Shown here one piece after another: positions 2,782 to 18,221 of a DNA stretch of 64,000 bases. Location: IMG/VR virus record IMGVR_UViG_3300032236_001850, positions 124,001 to 188,000 of that record. One strand, given 5' to 3'. Numbering within the stretch: the stretch's first letter is position 1; each line of letters opens with the position of its first letter. The notes under the pieces are model-generated. The model saw nothing but the letters and a program-made list of their open reading frames with translations, was not told the origin of the DNA and did not search any database. A program made the translations under genes and the position numbers.

Positions 2782-3342
2782 TTATGTAAATTTTGTTGCT
2801 CTTTTAGCTTTTATTAATTTTGTATACAAATCCCTGTTTGGAAGTTTATTTAGAATTTCTTGTAAATCCTCCGAATCCACAAATCTCATTATTCTGGGTG
2901 GGTTTTTTATTAGAGAATCAATAACACATTGATCAAAATCATCAGTTCCGTTATTTTTAAATATCTCATCAACATTACTAAAAACTTTTTTAAATTCCTC
3001 AATTATTTTGTACGGATTTCTTTCAATACACCAGAATGAGTACTTCTCATTATTTCTTGGTTTAAGTCCACTCCAGGCTTCATAGTCCATATTGTCGGCA
3101 TCTTGACTATTCATTAATTCACCAACCTCACTCATAAGCATATAAAGATCAGTCACTGTTGAAGCATCAGCTTCCTCAGCAAACTCTGAAATAACAACCG
3201 CAGCTGCATCAAAGAAATCCTTAGCAACCACGATCAAGTAACCAATCGTTGATACCTCCCTGCCAGTTATTTCCATATAGAAAACAAATCCCATCATATC
3301 AGATTTGTCATTTAGTTCCTCGTATAGTTTAATGTTTCTCAT
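2782..3342 (-). CDS. Hypothetical protein with CTS-like leader
   Basis: Starts MRNIKLYEELND; ATGA overlap with upstream gene. Confidence 0.8.
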   Translation of the reverse strand: MRNIKLYEELNDKSDMMGFVFYMEITGREVSTIGYLIVVAKDFFDAAAVVISEFAEEADASTVTDLYMLMSEVGELMNSQDADNMDYEAWSGLKPRNNEKYSFWCIERNPYKIIEEFKKVFSNVDEIFKNNGTDDFDQCVIDSLIKNPPRIMRFVDSEDLQEILNKLPNRDLYTKLIKAKRATKFT

Positions 3343-3965
3343 AAAAATCCTCTTTTTAATGCCCTTCCTATATGGGAAAAATCCTTTATTCCCGCTTTAT
3401 CCATGATTTTTTTCTTTAAATCCGGACACGGATTCAGAATATAAGTTGATGTTGGTTTGTCCTTAAAGAATTTAATAACCTTCGATTCTGGGATTCTTGT
3501 TATTAAAGATTTTATAAGATCTGGATTTCCACAGTCTATTAGCGGCTCCAAATTTTCGGGATCATCCAGGTATTTTCTATTTGACATATCATAGTCATAA
3601 AGTTCCTTAACTGCAAATTTTTCTATCCCTCTAAATATTGACTCGTAATCGGAAACACTAGACACACTAAATCCCATAATGTATTCCCAATCAAAATCTT
3701 TAAATTCGTAAATACCAATTCTTATCTTATCGTTGGATGTTGGTGTCATCTCTCTCAATTCATACTTCAACACAGTTTCATCCTCACCATGTGGATAAAT
3801 GGTTATCTTAGTTACCTTGCCGTCCTGTTTTTGTTCTGTGTTAATATCCGCCCATTCGGAAATTTTCTTATATGCATCAAGATTTCCCAATGAACCAACA
3901 TAAGGTCTATAAACATTCTCGTTGATTTTTCTTCCGAAAAGATTGAAAGATTTAATTATTCTCAT
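3339..3965 (-). CDS. Hypothetical protein, CTS-like leader plus TGIKD C-terminal module
   Basis: MRIIKSFNLF...; ends KAGIKDFSHIGRALKRGFL; GATATATA at 3970-3977 on minus strand. Confidence 0.85.
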   Translation of the reverse strand: MRIIKSFNLFGRKINENVYRPYVGSLGNLDAYKKISEWADINTEQKQDGKVTKITIYPHGEDETVLKYELREMTPTSNDKIRIGIYEFKDFDWEYIMGFSVSSVSDYESIFRGIEKFAVKELYDYDMSNRKYLDDPENLEPLIDCGNPDLIKSLITRIPESKVIKFFKDKPTSTYILNPCPDLKKKIMDKAGIKDFSHIGRALKRGFL

Positions 3966-3983
3966 CCCTTATATATCCCAAAT

Positions 3984-4069
3984 AAAAAAGGTTGGAGTAG
4001 CGAATTCCAACCTTTACATAGCCGTAACTATTCCGGTCCTAAAATCTGACTTCAGAGAGTCAGCCGGAT
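3984..4069 (-). ncRNA. Candidate structured small RNA (unidentified)
   Basis: AATATATA promoter variant at 4074-4081 (minus); stems UCCGG/CCGGA and CUGACU/AGUCAG, a UACG-loop hairpin, then terminator GGUUGGA/UCCAACC-U6; no ORF. Confidence 0.45.
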
Positions 4070-4137
4070 GTTCTATATATTCTTTGCATCCCAATTTTTA
4101 GGTCGAAATTTGATATATAAACCAAAAACATAATAAA

Positions 4138-4773
4138 ATGAGAAAAGCATGCATCGTGTTATTTCTTTTGGTTTTTGGAGTGATTAATGCTCAAGACACC
4201 ATAAGACTTAAACACACAAACTACACTGCTGTCTACAGCAAGACTTTAAATTACCCAGTACTTGTTGAATGGTGGGAAACCAAAGCAAAGGACGGATGTC
4301 CAAGCCCATTAAAAAGAAAAGATGAATTCAAACCAGATCCGCTTCTACTTAAGGAGACAGATATAGCGAAGGATTATGTTGGATCAGGGTATGACAGGGG
4401 ACATATGTGCCCAGCAGCTTCCAATCTATGTAGTGGTGATAAAGTTCAATCTGAATGCTTCTATTTCAGCAATATGGCACCGCAGCTTCACAGATTAAAT
4501 GCTGGAGATTGGAAAGTATTAGAGATGAAAACAAGAGAGATAGCGATTGCTAATGACAGTGTACATGTTTGGTGTGGTAGCTTGGGAGAGATTAAAAAAG
4601 TTGGTAAGATATCAATACCTAAAACCTGTTGGAAAGTGGTTTACATCAAGAAAACAAAAATCTTTACAGCATACATTTTCAATAATGATGATTCAAAACC
4701 AGACGGAATAGAAAACAATATAGTTCCTCTGGAAGCAGTAGAAAAATTAACAGGATATAAATTTAAAAGGTAA
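4138..4773 (+). CDS. DNA/RNA non-specific endonuclease (NucA/EndA type) with signal peptide
   Basis: YDRGHMCPA motif, FYFSNMAPQ, LNAGDWKVLE; hydrophobic N-terminus ending VINA-QD. Confidence 0.92.
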   Translation: MRKACIVLFLLVFGVINAQDTIRLKHTNYTAVYSKTLNYPVLVEWWETKAKDGCPSPLKRKDEFKPDPLLLKETDIAKDYVGSGYDRGHMCPAASNLCSGDKVQSECFYFSNMAPQLHRLNAGDWKVLEMKTREIAIANDSVHVWCGSLGEIKKVGKISIPKTCWKVVYIKKTKIFTAYIFNNDDSKPDGIENNIVPLEAVEKLTGYKFKR

Positions 4774-4806
4774 AAAAAAGGCTGATATCAATATCAGCCT
4801 TTTTTT
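4773..4806. terminator. Bidirectional intrinsic terminator
   Basis: A7-GGCTGATAT-caa-TATCAGCC-T run between convergent genes. Confidence 0.85.
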
Positions 4807-5569
4807 ATATCATTCCAGATTTTAGTTTTCTACCTATTTTTCCGTAATCTTTTAACCCTGTCCTTTCCAATACTCCAGCCTTAAATTTCTCAAGATTGTC
4901 GATCTTATAGAGTTCCAATGGATTTTTCTTGAAAAAATTATCAATATCCTCAAGAACATCATAATTTATAGGATCGCCGATTTTTAATTTAAGTATGTAC
5001 TCTAGATATTTTCTAATGAAATTGGAATATTCCGGAAGATGTAATTTTTTACTCTCCAAACCAGCATAAGTCATATAAAATCTACCCCCATATTCTCTAA
5101 AAGCTAATAAAATTTGGGATATAATAAGATGAAAAATATAGTTATTATCTCCGCTAACCTCTATTTGTCTCTCCCCAGCTTCATCAGTTCCTATATAATC
5201 AAATTTATTCTCGTCAGATTCGCCAATTACAAATCTTATTTTATAAACATTTGAACCTGATCCAAGACCAGGAGAGCAACTCATTATTTTTTCATTGGGT
5301 TCTGGGTTTAGAGCCTGGGTAAAAGCATAACTTATTGTTCCCCAAAGGAAATATGTATTTAATATAACATCAAGTGTCTTGAGCCCATTTGATTTATAAT
5401 CATAGATATCACCAGCATCATAATTAGGAAAAACATGTAGACCAACAGCTTGAGAGTGATTATTTTTATCCACTCTAAAAGTTATACATTTTTCCAAATA
5501 ATGGTATATTGGAATACGATCAATTGATTCTGATTCAAAAAGTTGATCAAAGGATTTTATTATTTTCAT
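4805..5569 (-). CDS. Hypothetical protein, CTS-like leader plus TGIKD module
   Basis: MKIIKSFDQLFES; ends RTGLKDYGKIGRKLKSGMI. Confidence 0.85.
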   Translation of the reverse strand: MKIIKSFDQLFESESIDRIPIYHYLEKCITFRVDKNNHSQAVGLHVFPNYDAGDIYDYKSNGLKTLDVILNTYFLWGTISYAFTQALNPEPNEKIMSCSPGLGSGSNVYKIRFVIGESDENKFDYIGTDEAGERQIEVSGDNNYIFHLIISQILLAFREYGGRFYMTYAGLESKKLHLPEYSNFIRKYLEYILKLKIGDPINYDVLEDIDNFFKKNPLELYKIDNLEKFKAGVLERTGLKDYGKIGRKLKSGMI

Positions 5570-6684
5570 TATATGAGCCCTCCTCTTAATTTTCTACCGA
5601 TAGCACTAAAATCTTTAATCCCAGTTCTTCTTAAAACACCAGCTTTATATTCTGGATAATCATCAAGTAAATAAAGATCCGTTGGATTTTTTTTCATATG
5701 GTCATCTAGGATTTTTTCAACTTCGGAACTCAAAGATGAACCAAGAAGATAACTTCTAGCAAAATCGGTGAGCAAATTGGATTTTTCATTCATATCTATA
5801 TAGTTTTCACCTATATAAATATTCAAATGTTCGATTTCCGTAGTGATTATCTTCTCTATTTCTTTAACCACCTCATCAATAGTTTTATAACCAAGATAAA
5901 TTTTAATATCTCTCATCTTTTTACTACGACCATGAAGATCAAGGTTTCGATCGACATTTTTGCTTGTTACCTTTTTACCTTCCCCTTTCGGTATAATTCG
6001 GATTTCATTTGCATTGGTACCAATCATGTATTGATTATTGTTTCTTTTTACAGCACCGCTTATTTCCAATATAAAATCAGGGAAAATACGTATGCCAGCT
6101 AAGGCCAAATAACGAAAATTTATCACAATCCCAGCATTTTTACCTTGCATATAAATACCACTAATCGAATTAATATGATCTATCAATTTGGATTTACCCT
6201 TGATTAAAGAGAAATCTGTTATGATGTCGCTTCTTCTTTCTTTTCTGTATACAACATATAAATCGATTGGGAGTTCCCATATCTTGGAAAAGATGAAAGC
6301 ATCATCGTCAACAAGCTCTTTTGCTTCCTTCCTATTGAAATCATTAGGTGCAAACTTATAAACAATATCTCTGATGAAAGTTTGAAGCAGATCCACAAGA
6401 TTCGAAGAGTATTTCATACCGTAATGGCTCCCACTTGAAACAAAGGTAAAGTGCCAATCGCTTCCAGATTTATAAAAGTATGGGCTGCCCGGATTGTTAA
6501 CATAGTCACTGGTGTTTTTGTTTATCAACACATTTATTCTACCGGTTCTTGTTGGGTAAAGTCTATACCATTTTTGAATTTGCTCGAGTTCTCTAGTTCC
6601 TTCGGCTAGTCTGAAGAACTCCTCACAGTCCTCATTCATTTTGGCTGCTTCAAAAAGTTCATTAAAAGTTTTAATTATTCTCAT
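5569..6684 (-). CDS. Hypothetical protein, CTS-like leader plus TGIKD module
   Basis: MRIIKTFNELFEA; ends RTGIKDFSAIGRKLRGGLI; GATATATA at 6689-6696 (minus). Confidence 0.85.
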   Translation of the reverse strand: MRIIKTFNELFEAAKMNEDCEEFFRLAEGTRELEQIQKWYRLYPTRTGRINVLINKNTSDYVNNPGSPYFYKSGSDWHFTFVSSGSHYGMKYSSNLVDLLQTFIRDIVYKFAPNDFNRKEAKELVDDDAFIFSKIWELPIDLYVVYRKERRSDIITDFSLIKGKSKLIDHINSISGIYMQGKNAGIVINFRYLALAGIRIFPDFILEISGAVKRNNNQYMIGTNANEIRIIPKGEGKKVTSKNVDRNLDLHGRSKKMRDIKIYLGYKTIDEVVKEIEKIITTEIEHLNIYIGENYIDMNEKSNLLTDFARSYLLGSSLSSEVEKILDDHMKKNPTDLYLLDDYPEYKAGVLRRTGIKDFSAIGRKLRGGLI

Positions 6685-6694
6685 GAAGTATATA

Positions 6695-6985
6695 TCACTT
6701 CACAGAAATCCAACCCTTACCCAGACAAACCAGATTTATAATGTCACAGTGTTCATCTGGAATATTAACCATTGTGAAGTATGAATGATCATAATCCTTA
6801 TTTGATTCAGCAAAGACACCATATAGATTTCTTCCACTGTAATATCCTGCAAGTTTTCTTCTAATATCCATATCCTCGGAGTTGCCAAAGGAGTATTTCT
6901 GACCACCAATAAATTTGAAGGAGCCCATTATGGAATCATTTAGACAATATTCTTCTCTGTAGATAAAGGATTCACCGGAGCACAT
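6695..6985 (-). CDS. Hypothetical protein, C-terminal WxxVK
   Basis: TAATG coupling to upstream gene; ends GWISVK. Confidence 0.7.
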   Translation of the reverse strand: MCSGESFIYREEYCLNDSIMGSFKFIGGQKYSFGNSEDMDIRRKLAGYYSGRNLYGVFAESNKDYDHSYFTMVNIPDEHCDIINLVCLGKGWISVK

Positions 6986-14280: not shown

Positions 14281-14324
14281 TACAATTCCGCCAGAATTGC
14301 TATTTGTTTTGATTGATTACAAAG

Positions 14325-14353
14325 AAAAAGGTCTGATTACTCAGACCTTTTTT
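14325..14353. terminator. Bidirectional intrinsic terminator
   Basis: A5-GGTCTGA-ttac-TCAGACC-T run. Confidence 0.85.
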
Positions 14354-14357
14354 GATT

Positions 14358-16517: not shown

Positions 16518-18221
16518 ATGGAATCAGGTACACTACAATTTTGGACAACTGGCGAGGCCTATATGGGCTTAATGAACGACTTTTTTAGATCTGGAGAATT
16601 TGAAAAATATCATCAGCTGCTTGGGGATGGCAACTTAGACAGAGCACAAAAGATGATGGCATTCAGATATAGAATGGTCCTAAGTGGGGACACTAGAACG
16701 GAGGAGGGTTTAAGCTGTTCTTTTCTACCAGAAGAGCCAAAAGACTTCAATAAAACACTATATTATGCTATTAGAACAGCTATCGTTGCAGCTAATAGAA
16801 AACATGATAGATGGAACGATAAAACTCTGGAAATAAGAGAGATTGCTAAATCCGGCTACCGAGATATTGTTACTCTACTAGAATATTTTCCAGTTGAGGA
16901 AATCTATAAGAGATGCTACAAATACATCATAGAGGAGGAAGGTTATACGTTAACCACTCTCTACGATGCAATAACTAAAAATGACCATACAATCTCGGGT
17001 CTTCTAATGAGAAACGGTGAGTTTGCTCAATGTGGTTACCAGGATCACATCTCACTGTATCCATTTCTTGTTCAACTTGGACTTGTAGAGGGTGAGGACA
17101 GATTGGATTGCGATGCAGTATCAATATCATCTAATATGTTATGTGGTGCTGCTGCTTTTGGGTTGGAATCTCTACATTTTGACCTTAATAAAAGGTATCA
17201 TCTCAGTGATGAGCAGATGACAGAGTTATGGCGACTTAGAGAATATCATCTACAGCACTACACTAGCAATGAGAAAAGATCAGTATCGGAAGGAATTCGT
17301 GAATTTTTCTGCTACAAAGAAGCAATGGGTGCTAAGTATGGCAACATTATGTTTCTAAAAAGATTTTTTCCACATATCAAAACATGCGAGGTTTCCAAAG
17401 ATTTCAGACCAGATTGGAAAGCCAACTTTGTTAGAACCTCACCAAAATATTCAATTCCTGGTCTTCTACATAGTATTAAAGCTAACGACGAGCAAGAAGC
17501 ACATAATGCTGTGCTACAAATCCAGAAAGACTTCGAAAAACATAAGGAAGTTCGGGGAAGAAACAATATACATTGGTTCTATCAGGAGTACTTGGAAGGG
17601 GAGAACGGTGTACTCAATTGCATAAAAACAACGGAGGTTAGCCGTGGATATGCAAGAGAATATGCTAATCTGATGGAATATGACATAAAGATAGCATGTA
17701 GCTCGGTTCAAGGTGACATTGTGGGTGGTAAGAAATCAAGCTTTGAAATAAGTTTAGACGATCAATCAGCACTAAGAAAGATTGCTAGAGAACTTGCAAC
17801 CACTTTCGAGGAAGACATCCAGCTAGAATTTGTAAGAGTTGCTGAGGGTGACATCAGAATAGTTCAATTCAGAACCCTGAAGGGAAGTCCACAGGTAAAC
17901 TTCGAACCACAGAAGGAAGAGTTGGAAAAAGCTATAGTGATTGGTAAAACTTTCTGCAAACCGTACTACACAAATAATGGCGACGAAATAAACACCAACG
18001 ATATTCTGGTTGTTGAAGAGGATTGCGAATCAGAAGCTCTATTGGGTAAGAAAGCACTTATAGTTGAGAATGACACAAACTTCTCGCACATTCTCGCACT
18101 ATCCAAAGCCCTAAATATTCCATCTATATACGGCACAGGTAAGGTTGATCTACCTAAGGACAAACAGGTTTGGTTTAATACAGGATATGGTACGGGGTAT
18201 GTAAAAATAATCACCAAATAA
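16518..18221 (+). CDS. PEP-synthase/PPDK-like ATP-grasp plus phospho-His swivel-domain protein
   Basis: VRTS, QEYLEGENGV, IQLEF...IVQFRTL (ATP-grasp-like) and DILVV...FSHILALSKALNIPSIYG (mobile His domain); no TIM-barrel part. Confidence 0.7.
   Translation: MESGTLQFWTTGEAYMGLMNDFFRSGEFEKYHQLLGDGNLDRAQKMMAFRYRMVLSGDTRTEEGLSCSFLPEEPKDFNKTLYYAIRTAIVAANRKHDRWNDKTLEIREIAKSGYRDIVTLLEYFPVEEIYKRCYKYIIEEEGYTLTTLYDAITKNDHTISGLLMRNGEFAQCGYQDHISLYPFLVQLGLVEGEDRLDCDAVSISSNMLCGAAAFGLESLHFDLNKRYHLSDEQMTELWRLREYHLQHYTSNEKRSVSEGIREFFCYKEAMGAKYGNIMFLKRFFPHIKTCEVSKDFRPDWKANFVRTSPKYSIPGLLHSIKANDEQEAHNAVLQIQKDFEKHKEVRGRNNIHWFYQEYLEGENGVLNCIKTTEVSRGYAREYANLMEYDIKIACSSVQGDIVGGKKSSFEISLDDQSALRKIARELATTFEEDIQLEFVRVAEGDIRIVQFRTLKGSPQVNFEPQKEELEKAIVIGKTFCKPYYTNNGDEINTNDILVVEEDCESEALLGKKALIVENDTNFSHILALSKALNIPSIYGTGKVDLPKDKQVWFNTGYGTGYVKIITK

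Follow-up and report, generated by a model that had tools for sequence, protein, structure and literature searches.

A predicted 86-nucleotide (nt) RNA gene lies on the minus strand of a 64,000-nt stretch of the IMG/VR virus record IMGVR_UViG_3300032236_001850 (bases 124001-188000 of the record; the whole stretch is called the window here). The record is a 434,509-bp phage genome with direct terminal repeats and 35% G+C. We are highly confident that the element is a genuine stand-alone RNA gene and that it belongs to a new family. Members occur in at least 200 viral contigs, among them some of the largest genomes of phages, and the only nucleotides that are invariant in the family read as antisense to a stretch of 23S ribosomal RNA (rRNA) that ranks among its most conserved and functionally critical. 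Given this complementarity, we propose, as a reading with an even chance of being right, that the RNA acts late and in trans by pairing with helix 69 of the host's 23S rRNA. The original prediction, made from the letters of the window, was of an independent structured small RNA with a late-type promoter and a terminator; its membership in a large phage family, and the predicted antisense relation to helix 69, had not been seen.

A covariance model of the RNAs from this phage and its one close relative detected weaker copies in three unrelated viral contigs, in which the words UUAGGACCG and UUCGCUAC were kept and the stems were different. We refer to these words, in their family-wide form, as motifs M1 and M2 (Table 1). 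A pattern built on UUAGGACCG plus UUCGCUAC matched at least 119 IMG/VR contigs in a first scan, and two further scans left either M1 or M2 free. The three scans together gave 222 loci with 103 distinct cores and place the family in at least 200 IMG/VR contigs. In the family core, a single-stranded UUAGGRYCG (M1) is followed by hairpin P3, by a linker rich in A and by P4, a terminator hairpin with UCGCUAC in its loop; the variable P2 is optional. P3, of 4-7 bp and directly 3' of M1, takes 54 distinct forms and is missing from none of the 208 family sequences; P4 has an 8-nt loop that is M2, an R-Y closing pair and a U-run after it. The RNA in the window has all of these parts, with UUAGGACCG (4042..4034) ahead of P3 (4031..4018) and with a AUUCGCUAC loop on a 10-bp stem followed by six U.

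To score this locus independently of its own sequence, a second model, R2, was built from 26 diverse members with this phage and its relative left out. R2 scores the window at 4044..3981 (minus strand) with 62.7 bits (E 2.4e-11). In the 26-member alignment, compensatory changes occur in 12 of 16 pairs, including 8 of the 9 P4 pairs; paired cells amount to 83%, whereas shuffles reach 76 ± 1%, and the covariation score of 0.394 compares with 0.267 after shuffling, with none of 500 shuffles as high in either measure and with lower values for slid controls. Homologues and covariation had been named in the original prediction as a check, and both were found. G-U pairs are frequent in the family stems, and because they become A-C mismatches on the opposite strand, the transcribed strand is the minus strand of the window. 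The next R2 match in the window, at 14302..14357 (plus strand; 18.8 bits, E 0.04), is probably an A-rich stretch with a terminator hairpin.

RNAfold gives the 86-nt RNA a minimum free energy (MFE) of -27.4 kcal/mol, with a z-score of -3.0 and 1 of 200 shuffles equally stable. The stability of the fold alone is modestly above chance, and the strong evidence is conservation in other phages. The predicted fold contains the stems that had been described from the sequence: P1 (UCCGG/CCGGA), the hairpin with a UACG loop and the terminator with a 9-nt loop. The CUGACU/AGUCAG hairpin is one of two near-isoenergetic forms of P2, at -27.0 kcal/mol against -27.4 for the MFE variant. The probability of being unpaired is ~1.0 for M2, which is predicted to be unpaired in all members, and ~55% for M1.

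A full-text search for the M1 and M2 words returned papers on 23S rRNA m5U1939 and papers carrying the I-CeuI site, and the 23S region around helix 69 was therefore examined. Both motifs had been defined before any comparison with rRNA. With E. coli rrlH as the target (positions 1906-1940, GGCCGUAACUAUAACGGUCCUAAGGUAGCGAAAUU), M1 (UUAGGACCG) is the exact complement of 23S positions 1920-1928, which are the 3' strand of helix 69 and the junction, and M2 (UUCGCUAC) is the exact complement of positions 1930-1937. The 5' strand and loop of P3, AUAGUUACGGC, complement positions 1907-1917, the loop and 5' strand of helix 69. The Watson-Crick runs are thus RNA positions 28-36 with 1920-1928, 39-49 with 1907-1917 and 66-73 with 1930-1937; between RNA positions 28-49 and 1907-1928, 20 of 22 nt match. 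Local alignment gives an antisense score of 34, compared with 18.6 ± 2.0 (maximum 27) for 500 shuffles, and places the best site in the entire 23S rRNA at helix 69 for every one of the 82 unique members. Cofolding, with the unfolding of both partners included in the free-energy difference (ddG), yields -22.4 kcal/mol, against -3.7 ± 2.3 for shuffled targets and -6.8 for the next-best real 23S window. By our own arithmetic (2904/4^9 x 40/4^8), the chance that both motifs would fall on adjacent 23S segments is ~1e-5. In the phage genome itself, no site with both target words was found except the opposite strand of the RNA gene.

The target letters are upper-case in the Rfam bacterial large-subunit (LSU) consensus, and we therefore regard the target as near-universal; positions 1930-1934 form an unpaired junction in that consensus. 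Across the family, complementarity usually covers 1916-1928 (13 nt) plus 1929 or 1930 to 1937. M2 does not vary: the scan that left it free found UCGCUAC in 75 of 75 unique sequences. The scan that left M1 free found UUAGGACCG 39 times, UUAGGGCCG 9 times and UUAGGAUCG 4 times. In UUAGGGCCG and UUAGGAUCG, as in UUGGGGCCG (contig L076), pairing to U1923, G1922 or U1926 is kept by G-U wobble, and the commonest variable position of M1 faces U1923, one of only two non-universal letters in 1906-1940. M1 and M2 thus have in silico the property expected of a trans-acting small RNA (sRNA), namely a conserved, exposed seed facing a conserved target.

IMG/VR holds one close relative of this phage, the 430-kb IMGVR_UViG_3300034116_002156, with the same two flanking genes, whose proteins are 67% and 72% identical. 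The RNA is present in single copy in both genomes and is identical at 85 of 86 positions, the single change being in the bulge; the DNA between the two promoters has diverged. Over 6.6 kb aligned with the relative, no other 86-nt window exceeds 89.5% identity, whereas that of the RNA reaches 98.8%. The whole RNA is under strong purifying selection. A strain that is ~97% identical over 2800..5600 of the window is present in X2 and X3, pond and viral metagenome runs from other studies. Among the differences listed for it, none lies inside the RNA save one extra U in the U-run (seven), and two are bases just 5' of the promoter box (4083, 4084).

Rfam 15 at gathering score gave no match in the 64-kb window or in the loci of three other members, in line with the earlier failure to assign a family; at E<=10 there were only terminator-driven, sub-threshold matches, such as STnc390 with 21.8 bits against a cutoff of 50. 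A blastn search of the locus and three members against 50,697 deposited phage genomes found only LR756502.1 and two chance Microviridae matches. LR756502.1 is a 642-kb phage in which the family member is preceded by AATATATA-ttat and opens with ATCCGG, the same start architecture as for the RNA described here. When one genome from each of 185,579 prokaryote species was scanned with the pattern, two matches were found; the hairpin is missing from both, and a search of these genomes with R2 at E<=1 came back empty, so we attribute the two to chance. The one match of an exact 18-mer scan, in contig L084, was also rejected as chance, being inside a tape-measure-like open reading frame (ORF) of a high-GC contig. 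The family appears to be restricted to phages and to be absent from Rfam 15 and from the papers searched.

The setting of the RNA differs between large and small phages. Among the large ones, this phage, its relative, LR756502.1 and contigs L143 and L183 have both the closing stem P1 (CCGG) and an own RATATATA box; the P1-class members L160 and L109 have no clear box. P1 is either UCCGG/CCGGA or ACCGG/CCGGU. P1-class members sit between genes that differ from phage to phage, and across six large-phage members the downstream genes are unrelated, the next gene being convergent in two (L307 and L143). Most small phages have a conserved ORF of 167-175 amino acids (aa) directly ahead of the RNA, with ~10 nt or less between its stop codon and the start of the RNA, and its product may be a partner of the RNA. 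Pfam, PHROG and Atlas gave no function for this ORF, and it is absent from the genome of the phage studied here. Its product ends in ..SPRAKEYLK.C..VKEK and is virus-only, with examples at L094:3524-4027(+) and L137:7015-7542(+).

The promoter assignment relies on a k-mer count upstream of 587 ORFs of the phage, which also defines the late promoter of this 434-kb genome. The dominant upstream word is GATATATA, with 92 genome copies, 67 of them at most 45 nt from an ATG. An A occupies the fifth base after the box in 59 of these 67 gene-proximal copies, and we therefore assigned the transcription start to that A. For 14 genes the ATG is exactly at the predicted start, making them leaderless, and most others have leaders of ~15-25 nt. 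The resulting consensus, RATATATA-N4-A, lies upstream of the tail sheath, portal, prohead protease and head-closure genes. A second box, TAnnTTTG (often TATATTTGC), precedes DNA ligase, helicase-like and ATP-dependent protease genes. TAnnTTTG is the -7 box of Bacteroidota sigma-A promoters; this class of genes suggests early transcription by the host RNA polymerase, and the presence of the boxes means that the host is probably a member of the Bacteroidota. Because the RATATATA class precedes virion genes and the TAnnTTTG class the other set, the earlier name "late-type promoter" is a fair one. The RNA shares its type of box with the virion structural genes, and its late timing is predicted from this sequence.

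The box of the RNA, AATATATA, differs from GATATATA at position 1 (A, not G) and is the sole one-mismatch variant enriched before genes, with 14 of 43 copies near gene starts compared with 67 of 92 for GATATATA. The relative has the canonical GATATATA at the same place, followed by the spacer gagc and then A. The minus-strand sequence quoted in the original prediction, from AATATATA through gaac and A4069 to the end of the U-run, is exactly as found in the window, and its placement of the start at the base of the UCCGG/CCGGA stem agrees with the conserved A five bases past the box and with the same AATATATA-N4-ATCCGG arrangement in LR756502.1. It had also been argued that the RNA is not a leader, since the downstream gene has a promoter of its own. 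That promoter, GATATATA followed by N4 and the ATG, is indeed present; each flanking gene has a promoter of its own, no window of the alignment is better conserved than the RNA, and its neighbours in other large phages are unrelated. The claim that no ORF is present holds as well: the RNA strand has nothing beyond AUG-UAA, and a 59-aa TTG ORF on the opposite strand is unconserved in the family. At the level of sequence, the RNA thus has its own promoter and its own terminator, separate from the neighbouring messenger RNAs (mRNAs), as expected of a trans-acting sRNA.

Helix 69 forms the intersubunit bridge B2a and touches the A- and P-site transfer RNAs (tRNAs). According to PMC12828698, a synthetic antisense peptide nucleic acid (PNA) to helix 69 blocks E. 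coli translation and growth (Kulik et al. 2017). If the RNA does pair with helix 69, we envisage the following. Transcription from the RATATATA-N4-A promoter would start at A4069 and would end at ~3984, at P4 and its U-run, to yield an RNA of ~86 nt late in infection. This RNA would base-pair with host 23S rRNA at helix 69 and the segment that follows it, the likely target being either the free 50S subunit or a pre-50S particle during assembly. Pairing would begin at two seeds, the exposed UUAGGA and the loop of P4, after which P1 and P3 would open and the duplex would extend over helix 69. The expected outcome would be an altered supply of working host ribosomes, for instance through blocked subunit joining or blocked late 50S maturation, which we would expect from the role of helix 69 together with the effect of the PNA. 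The phage might gain by halting the synthesis of new ribosomes, by parking subunits or by shielding the site from a host factor. A broader proposal, to which we give somewhat less than an even chance, is that phages of Bacteroidota-like hosts with genomes from tens of kb to 642 kb share an RNA that binds 23S rRNA at helix 69 and just past it, with which they would take over, park or disable ribosomes or block new 50S subunits.

Several points weigh against pairing with helix 69. The transcript is predicted from its signals, as none of the 13 sequencing runs that hold the phage is an RNA run, and E. coli 23S rRNA and the Rfam bacterial LSU consensus stand in for the host's own rRNA. Because the order of M1 and M2 is the 5'-3' order of their targets, one continuous duplex is impossible, and the RNA must therefore bind as two helices, as the exon-binding sites EBS2 and EBS1 do. 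Full pairing of all 8 nt in an 8-nt loop is difficult without strain. In 70S ribosomes helix 69, a hairpin in its own right, lies buried at the interface of the subunits, and P1 and P3 of the RNA in this phage sequester the CCG of M1 and the helix-69 extension. Many members are imperfectly complementary outside 1916-1928, the loop of helix 69 included: U1915 usually faces a mismatch, and A1916 faces a C in 28% of members. The argument from wobble pairs is only modestly significant because the variants are all transitions, and the differences listed for the pond strain, although compatible with conservation of the RNA, are a weak point. The RNA would need to be very abundant to affect most ribosomes, and the benefit is questionable because the phage itself needs ribosomes.

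We think it unlikely that M1 and M2 are instead protein recognition sites of a structured decoy, sponge or scaffold RNA, with the 23S likeness a relic of an antisense ribosomal DNA (rDNA) fragment. The presentation of the motifs, one in a hairpin loop and one in a single strand, does resemble that of protein-binding sites; their permuted order relative to a contiguous antisense fits an old, rearranged fragment, and the ORF directly ahead of the RNA in most small phages could encode the partner. However, a relic would drift, whereas the motifs are invariant over 103 cores while the stems vary freely, and the variants that are observed preserve pairing with 23S rRNA. Moreover, large phages have the RNA without the ~170-aa ORF, and two independently defined motifs would rarely fall on adjacent 23S segments by chance. 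A smaller probability still attaches to a guide RNA of a ribonucleoprotein (RNP) that pairs with 23S RNA or rDNA and directs a phage or host nuclease or modifying enzyme, as snoRNAs or the EBS loops of group II introns do, rather than acting as a steric block. Recognition in two parts and in target order by two exposed elements is the topology of EBS2/EBS1 on their intron-binding sites, IBS2/IBS1, and the 23S site is a classic mobile-element target, the motif search having led to I-CeuI-site papers. However, no conserved enzyme gene was found next to the RNA, the flanks differing between large phages and the ~170-aa ORF of small phages lacking a recognisable domain; C/D and H/ACA boxes are not conserved, and absence from the prokaryote genomes scanned speaks against integration into rDNA.

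An element acting only in cis, as terminator or 3'-untranslated-region stabiliser of the upstream gene or as attenuator of the downstream gene, seems to us quite improbable. P4 with its U-run is a canonical intrinsic terminator, and in small phages the element is mostly within ~10 nt of the upstream stop codon; but the upstream gene in this phage is divergent, which leaves no transcript to be terminated other than that of the RNA itself, and the RNA is served by a separate promoter while the downstream gene has a leaderless promoter past the terminator. In addition, the next gene is convergent in L307 and L143, and terminator loops are not normally invariant, as UCGCUAC is. The RNA is compact and multi-stemmed with conserved unpaired nucleotides, as a self-cleaving ribozyme or ligand-sensing riboswitch might be, yet Rfam models of ribozymes and riboswitches give no match even with the threshold relaxed to E<=10, there is no conserved downstream gene to regulate, and complementarity to rRNA already accounts for the conserved nucleotides; we consider this very improbable, and nothing in our analysis supports the earlier suggestion of self-cleavage. 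Hardly credible, finally, is an element that works as DNA, be it a protein-binding site, an origin or a packaging signal. Two invariant words could be DNA-binding sites, but the covarying stems with their many G-U pairs are sensible only for an RNA of this strand, and promoter and terminator bracket the element exactly.

Some more specific identities were tried and rejected. A riboswitch or attenuator leader was set aside for want of a constant same-strand downstream gene in the six large-phage members, and a nut site of the boxA/boxB type or a put RNA for want of a common downstream operon. A C/D box guide RNA would have RUGAUGA, which is missing, and the only CUGA is that in the variable P2 of the present RNA, other members having none. 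A preQ1-I-like loop was considered, but there is neither an A-rich tail nor an Rfam match. An attP site or tRNA 3' fragment was rejected because the loop is not a T-loop and there are no copies in bacterial genomes, an I-CeuI-type homing site because the two halves are permuted and separated, and a group I internal guide sequence because its two parts are in the wrong order.

In its general form, with ~50-100 nt, its own promoter, an intrinsic terminator and exposed seeds, the RNA resembles trans-encoded sRNAs such as the prophage RNA DicF and phage sRNAs with Rho-independent terminators. Known trans-encoded sRNAs have mRNAs or sRNAs as targets, whereas the two seeds of this RNA face adjacent segments of a functional centre of 23S rRNA; it also differs in being restricted to phages, and no chaperone is known for it. 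To our knowledge, the phage sRNAs described so far act on mRNAs, and the known phage attacks on the ribosome are made by proteins. Conserved antisense elements of ~8-20 nt against universal rRNA, sometimes bipartite, are also found in archaeal and eukaryotic C/D and H/ACA small nucleolar RNAs (snoRNAs) and in U3. Unlike these, the family has no conserved C (RUGAUGA), D (CUGA) or H/ACA boxes, and the order of its elements differs from that of an H/ACA pocket; we know of no snoRNA-type RNPs in bacteria or phages. In group II introns, EBS1 and EBS2, one of which sits in a terminal loop, recognise the adjacent IBS1 and IBS2 with their 5'-3' order unchanged. The likeness, two exposed elements with adjacent targets, is only topological: here there is no intron architecture, no domain V and no nearby reverse transcriptase or maturase.

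Huge phages and phages of Bacteroidota reportedly encode ribosomal proteins such as bS21. The RNA would likewise be a factor directed at the ribosome, predicted here for the same kind of phages, including the 642-kb LR756502.1, with the difference that this factor is an RNA. The helix 69 PNA, as presented in PMC12828698, is antisense to the same site and shows it to be accessible, with translation blocked on binding; that PNA is man-made, short and contiguous, whereas the phage RNA is natural, structured and bipartite, with an action that is predicted only. Within the incomplete coverage of our literature search, no paper was found on a phage RNA complementary to helix 69 or to 23S rRNA.

Phages with this RNA may thus act on the host ribosome through an RNA. 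If so, no natural antisense RNA against a functional centre of the ribosome of bacteria would precede it, and it would be the RNA equivalent of the ribosomal proteins that phages encode. Real pairing would establish a new type of mechanism for taking over the host, and the RNA could serve as a natural model for antisense inhibitors directed at helix 69 and as a compact marker for a group of uncultured phages. A base-pairing sRNA with a terminator is already known; the novelty lies in the target, in the bipartite, same-order recognition and in the restriction to phages, and the mechanism would be new to phage biology if pairing is confirmed. Even if the link to rRNA is a relic, the family is a well-supported new structured RNA family for RNA family databases.

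Table 1 Features of the small RNA and its surroundings, in window coordinates
Feature	Position	Strand	Remarks
Small RNA, 86 nt	3984..4069	-	RNA position i = window coordinate 4070-i
Late-promoter box AATATATA	4074..4081	-	One-mismatch form of GATATATA; 4-nt spacer gaac (4073..4070)
Predicted transcription start A, RNA nt 1	4069	-	Inferred from A at fifth base after box
5' domain: P1, P2 and bulge AUUUUAGGA	4032..4068	-	RNAfold
P1, UCCGG paired to CCGGA	4068..4064 with 4036..4032	-	RNAfold
P2, inside P1	4063..4046	-	Two alternative pairings
Motif M1, UUAGGACCG	4034..4042	-	UUAGGA unpaired, CCG within P1
Hairpin P3, AUAGU-UACG-GCUAU	4018..4031	-	5' strand and loop are AUAGUUACGGC (4031..4021)
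Hairpin P4, intrinsic terminator	3987..4015	-	10-bp stem AAAGGUUGGA/UCCAACCUUU; 9-nt loop AUUCGCUAC (4005..3997)
Motif M2, UUCGCUAC, in P4 loop	3997..4004	-	
Terminator U-run, six U	3984..3989	-	
GATATATA, late promoter of 208-aa gene	3970..3977	-	N4 then ATG 3965, leaderless class; 3' boundary of the RNA, not part of it
GATATATA, late promoter of Endonuclease_NS gene	4112..4119	+	ATG 4138; other boundary, not part of the RNA
208-aa ORF, downstream of RNA	3339..3965	-	ATG at 3965
Secreted Endonuclease_NS gene, divergent neighbour	4138..4773	+	E 2.5e-34; signal peptide

The RNA occupies a 172-nt gap separating two divergent genes (Table 1). The plus-strand neighbour encodes a DNA/RNA non-specific endonuclease with 213 relatives in IMG/VR contigs at ~60-72% identity. 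At 4773..4806, between this gene and the convergent next gene, lies a 15-bp palindromic hairpin flanked by A/T runs, likely a bidirectional terminator. The 208-aa ORF is one of a set of paralogous small proteins that start MRIIK(T/S)FN.., all behind leaderless late promoters and none with a Pfam or PHROG family match. Other paralogues have gene starts at 6696(-), 7910(+) and 46621(-), with further copies outside the window; GATATATA boxes are also found near 6696(-) and 7910(+). ARAGORN found no tRNA gene and no transfer-messenger RNA gene in the window. The TAnnTTTG class comprises 66 ORFs genome-wide, with boxes, for example, upstream of window positions 16518 and 26279. Outside the window, at genome position 293109(+), a GATATATA box occupies the loop of a perfect hairpin (aaagctttccttg GATATATA aaggaaagcttttttt), so that terminator and promoter overlap there.

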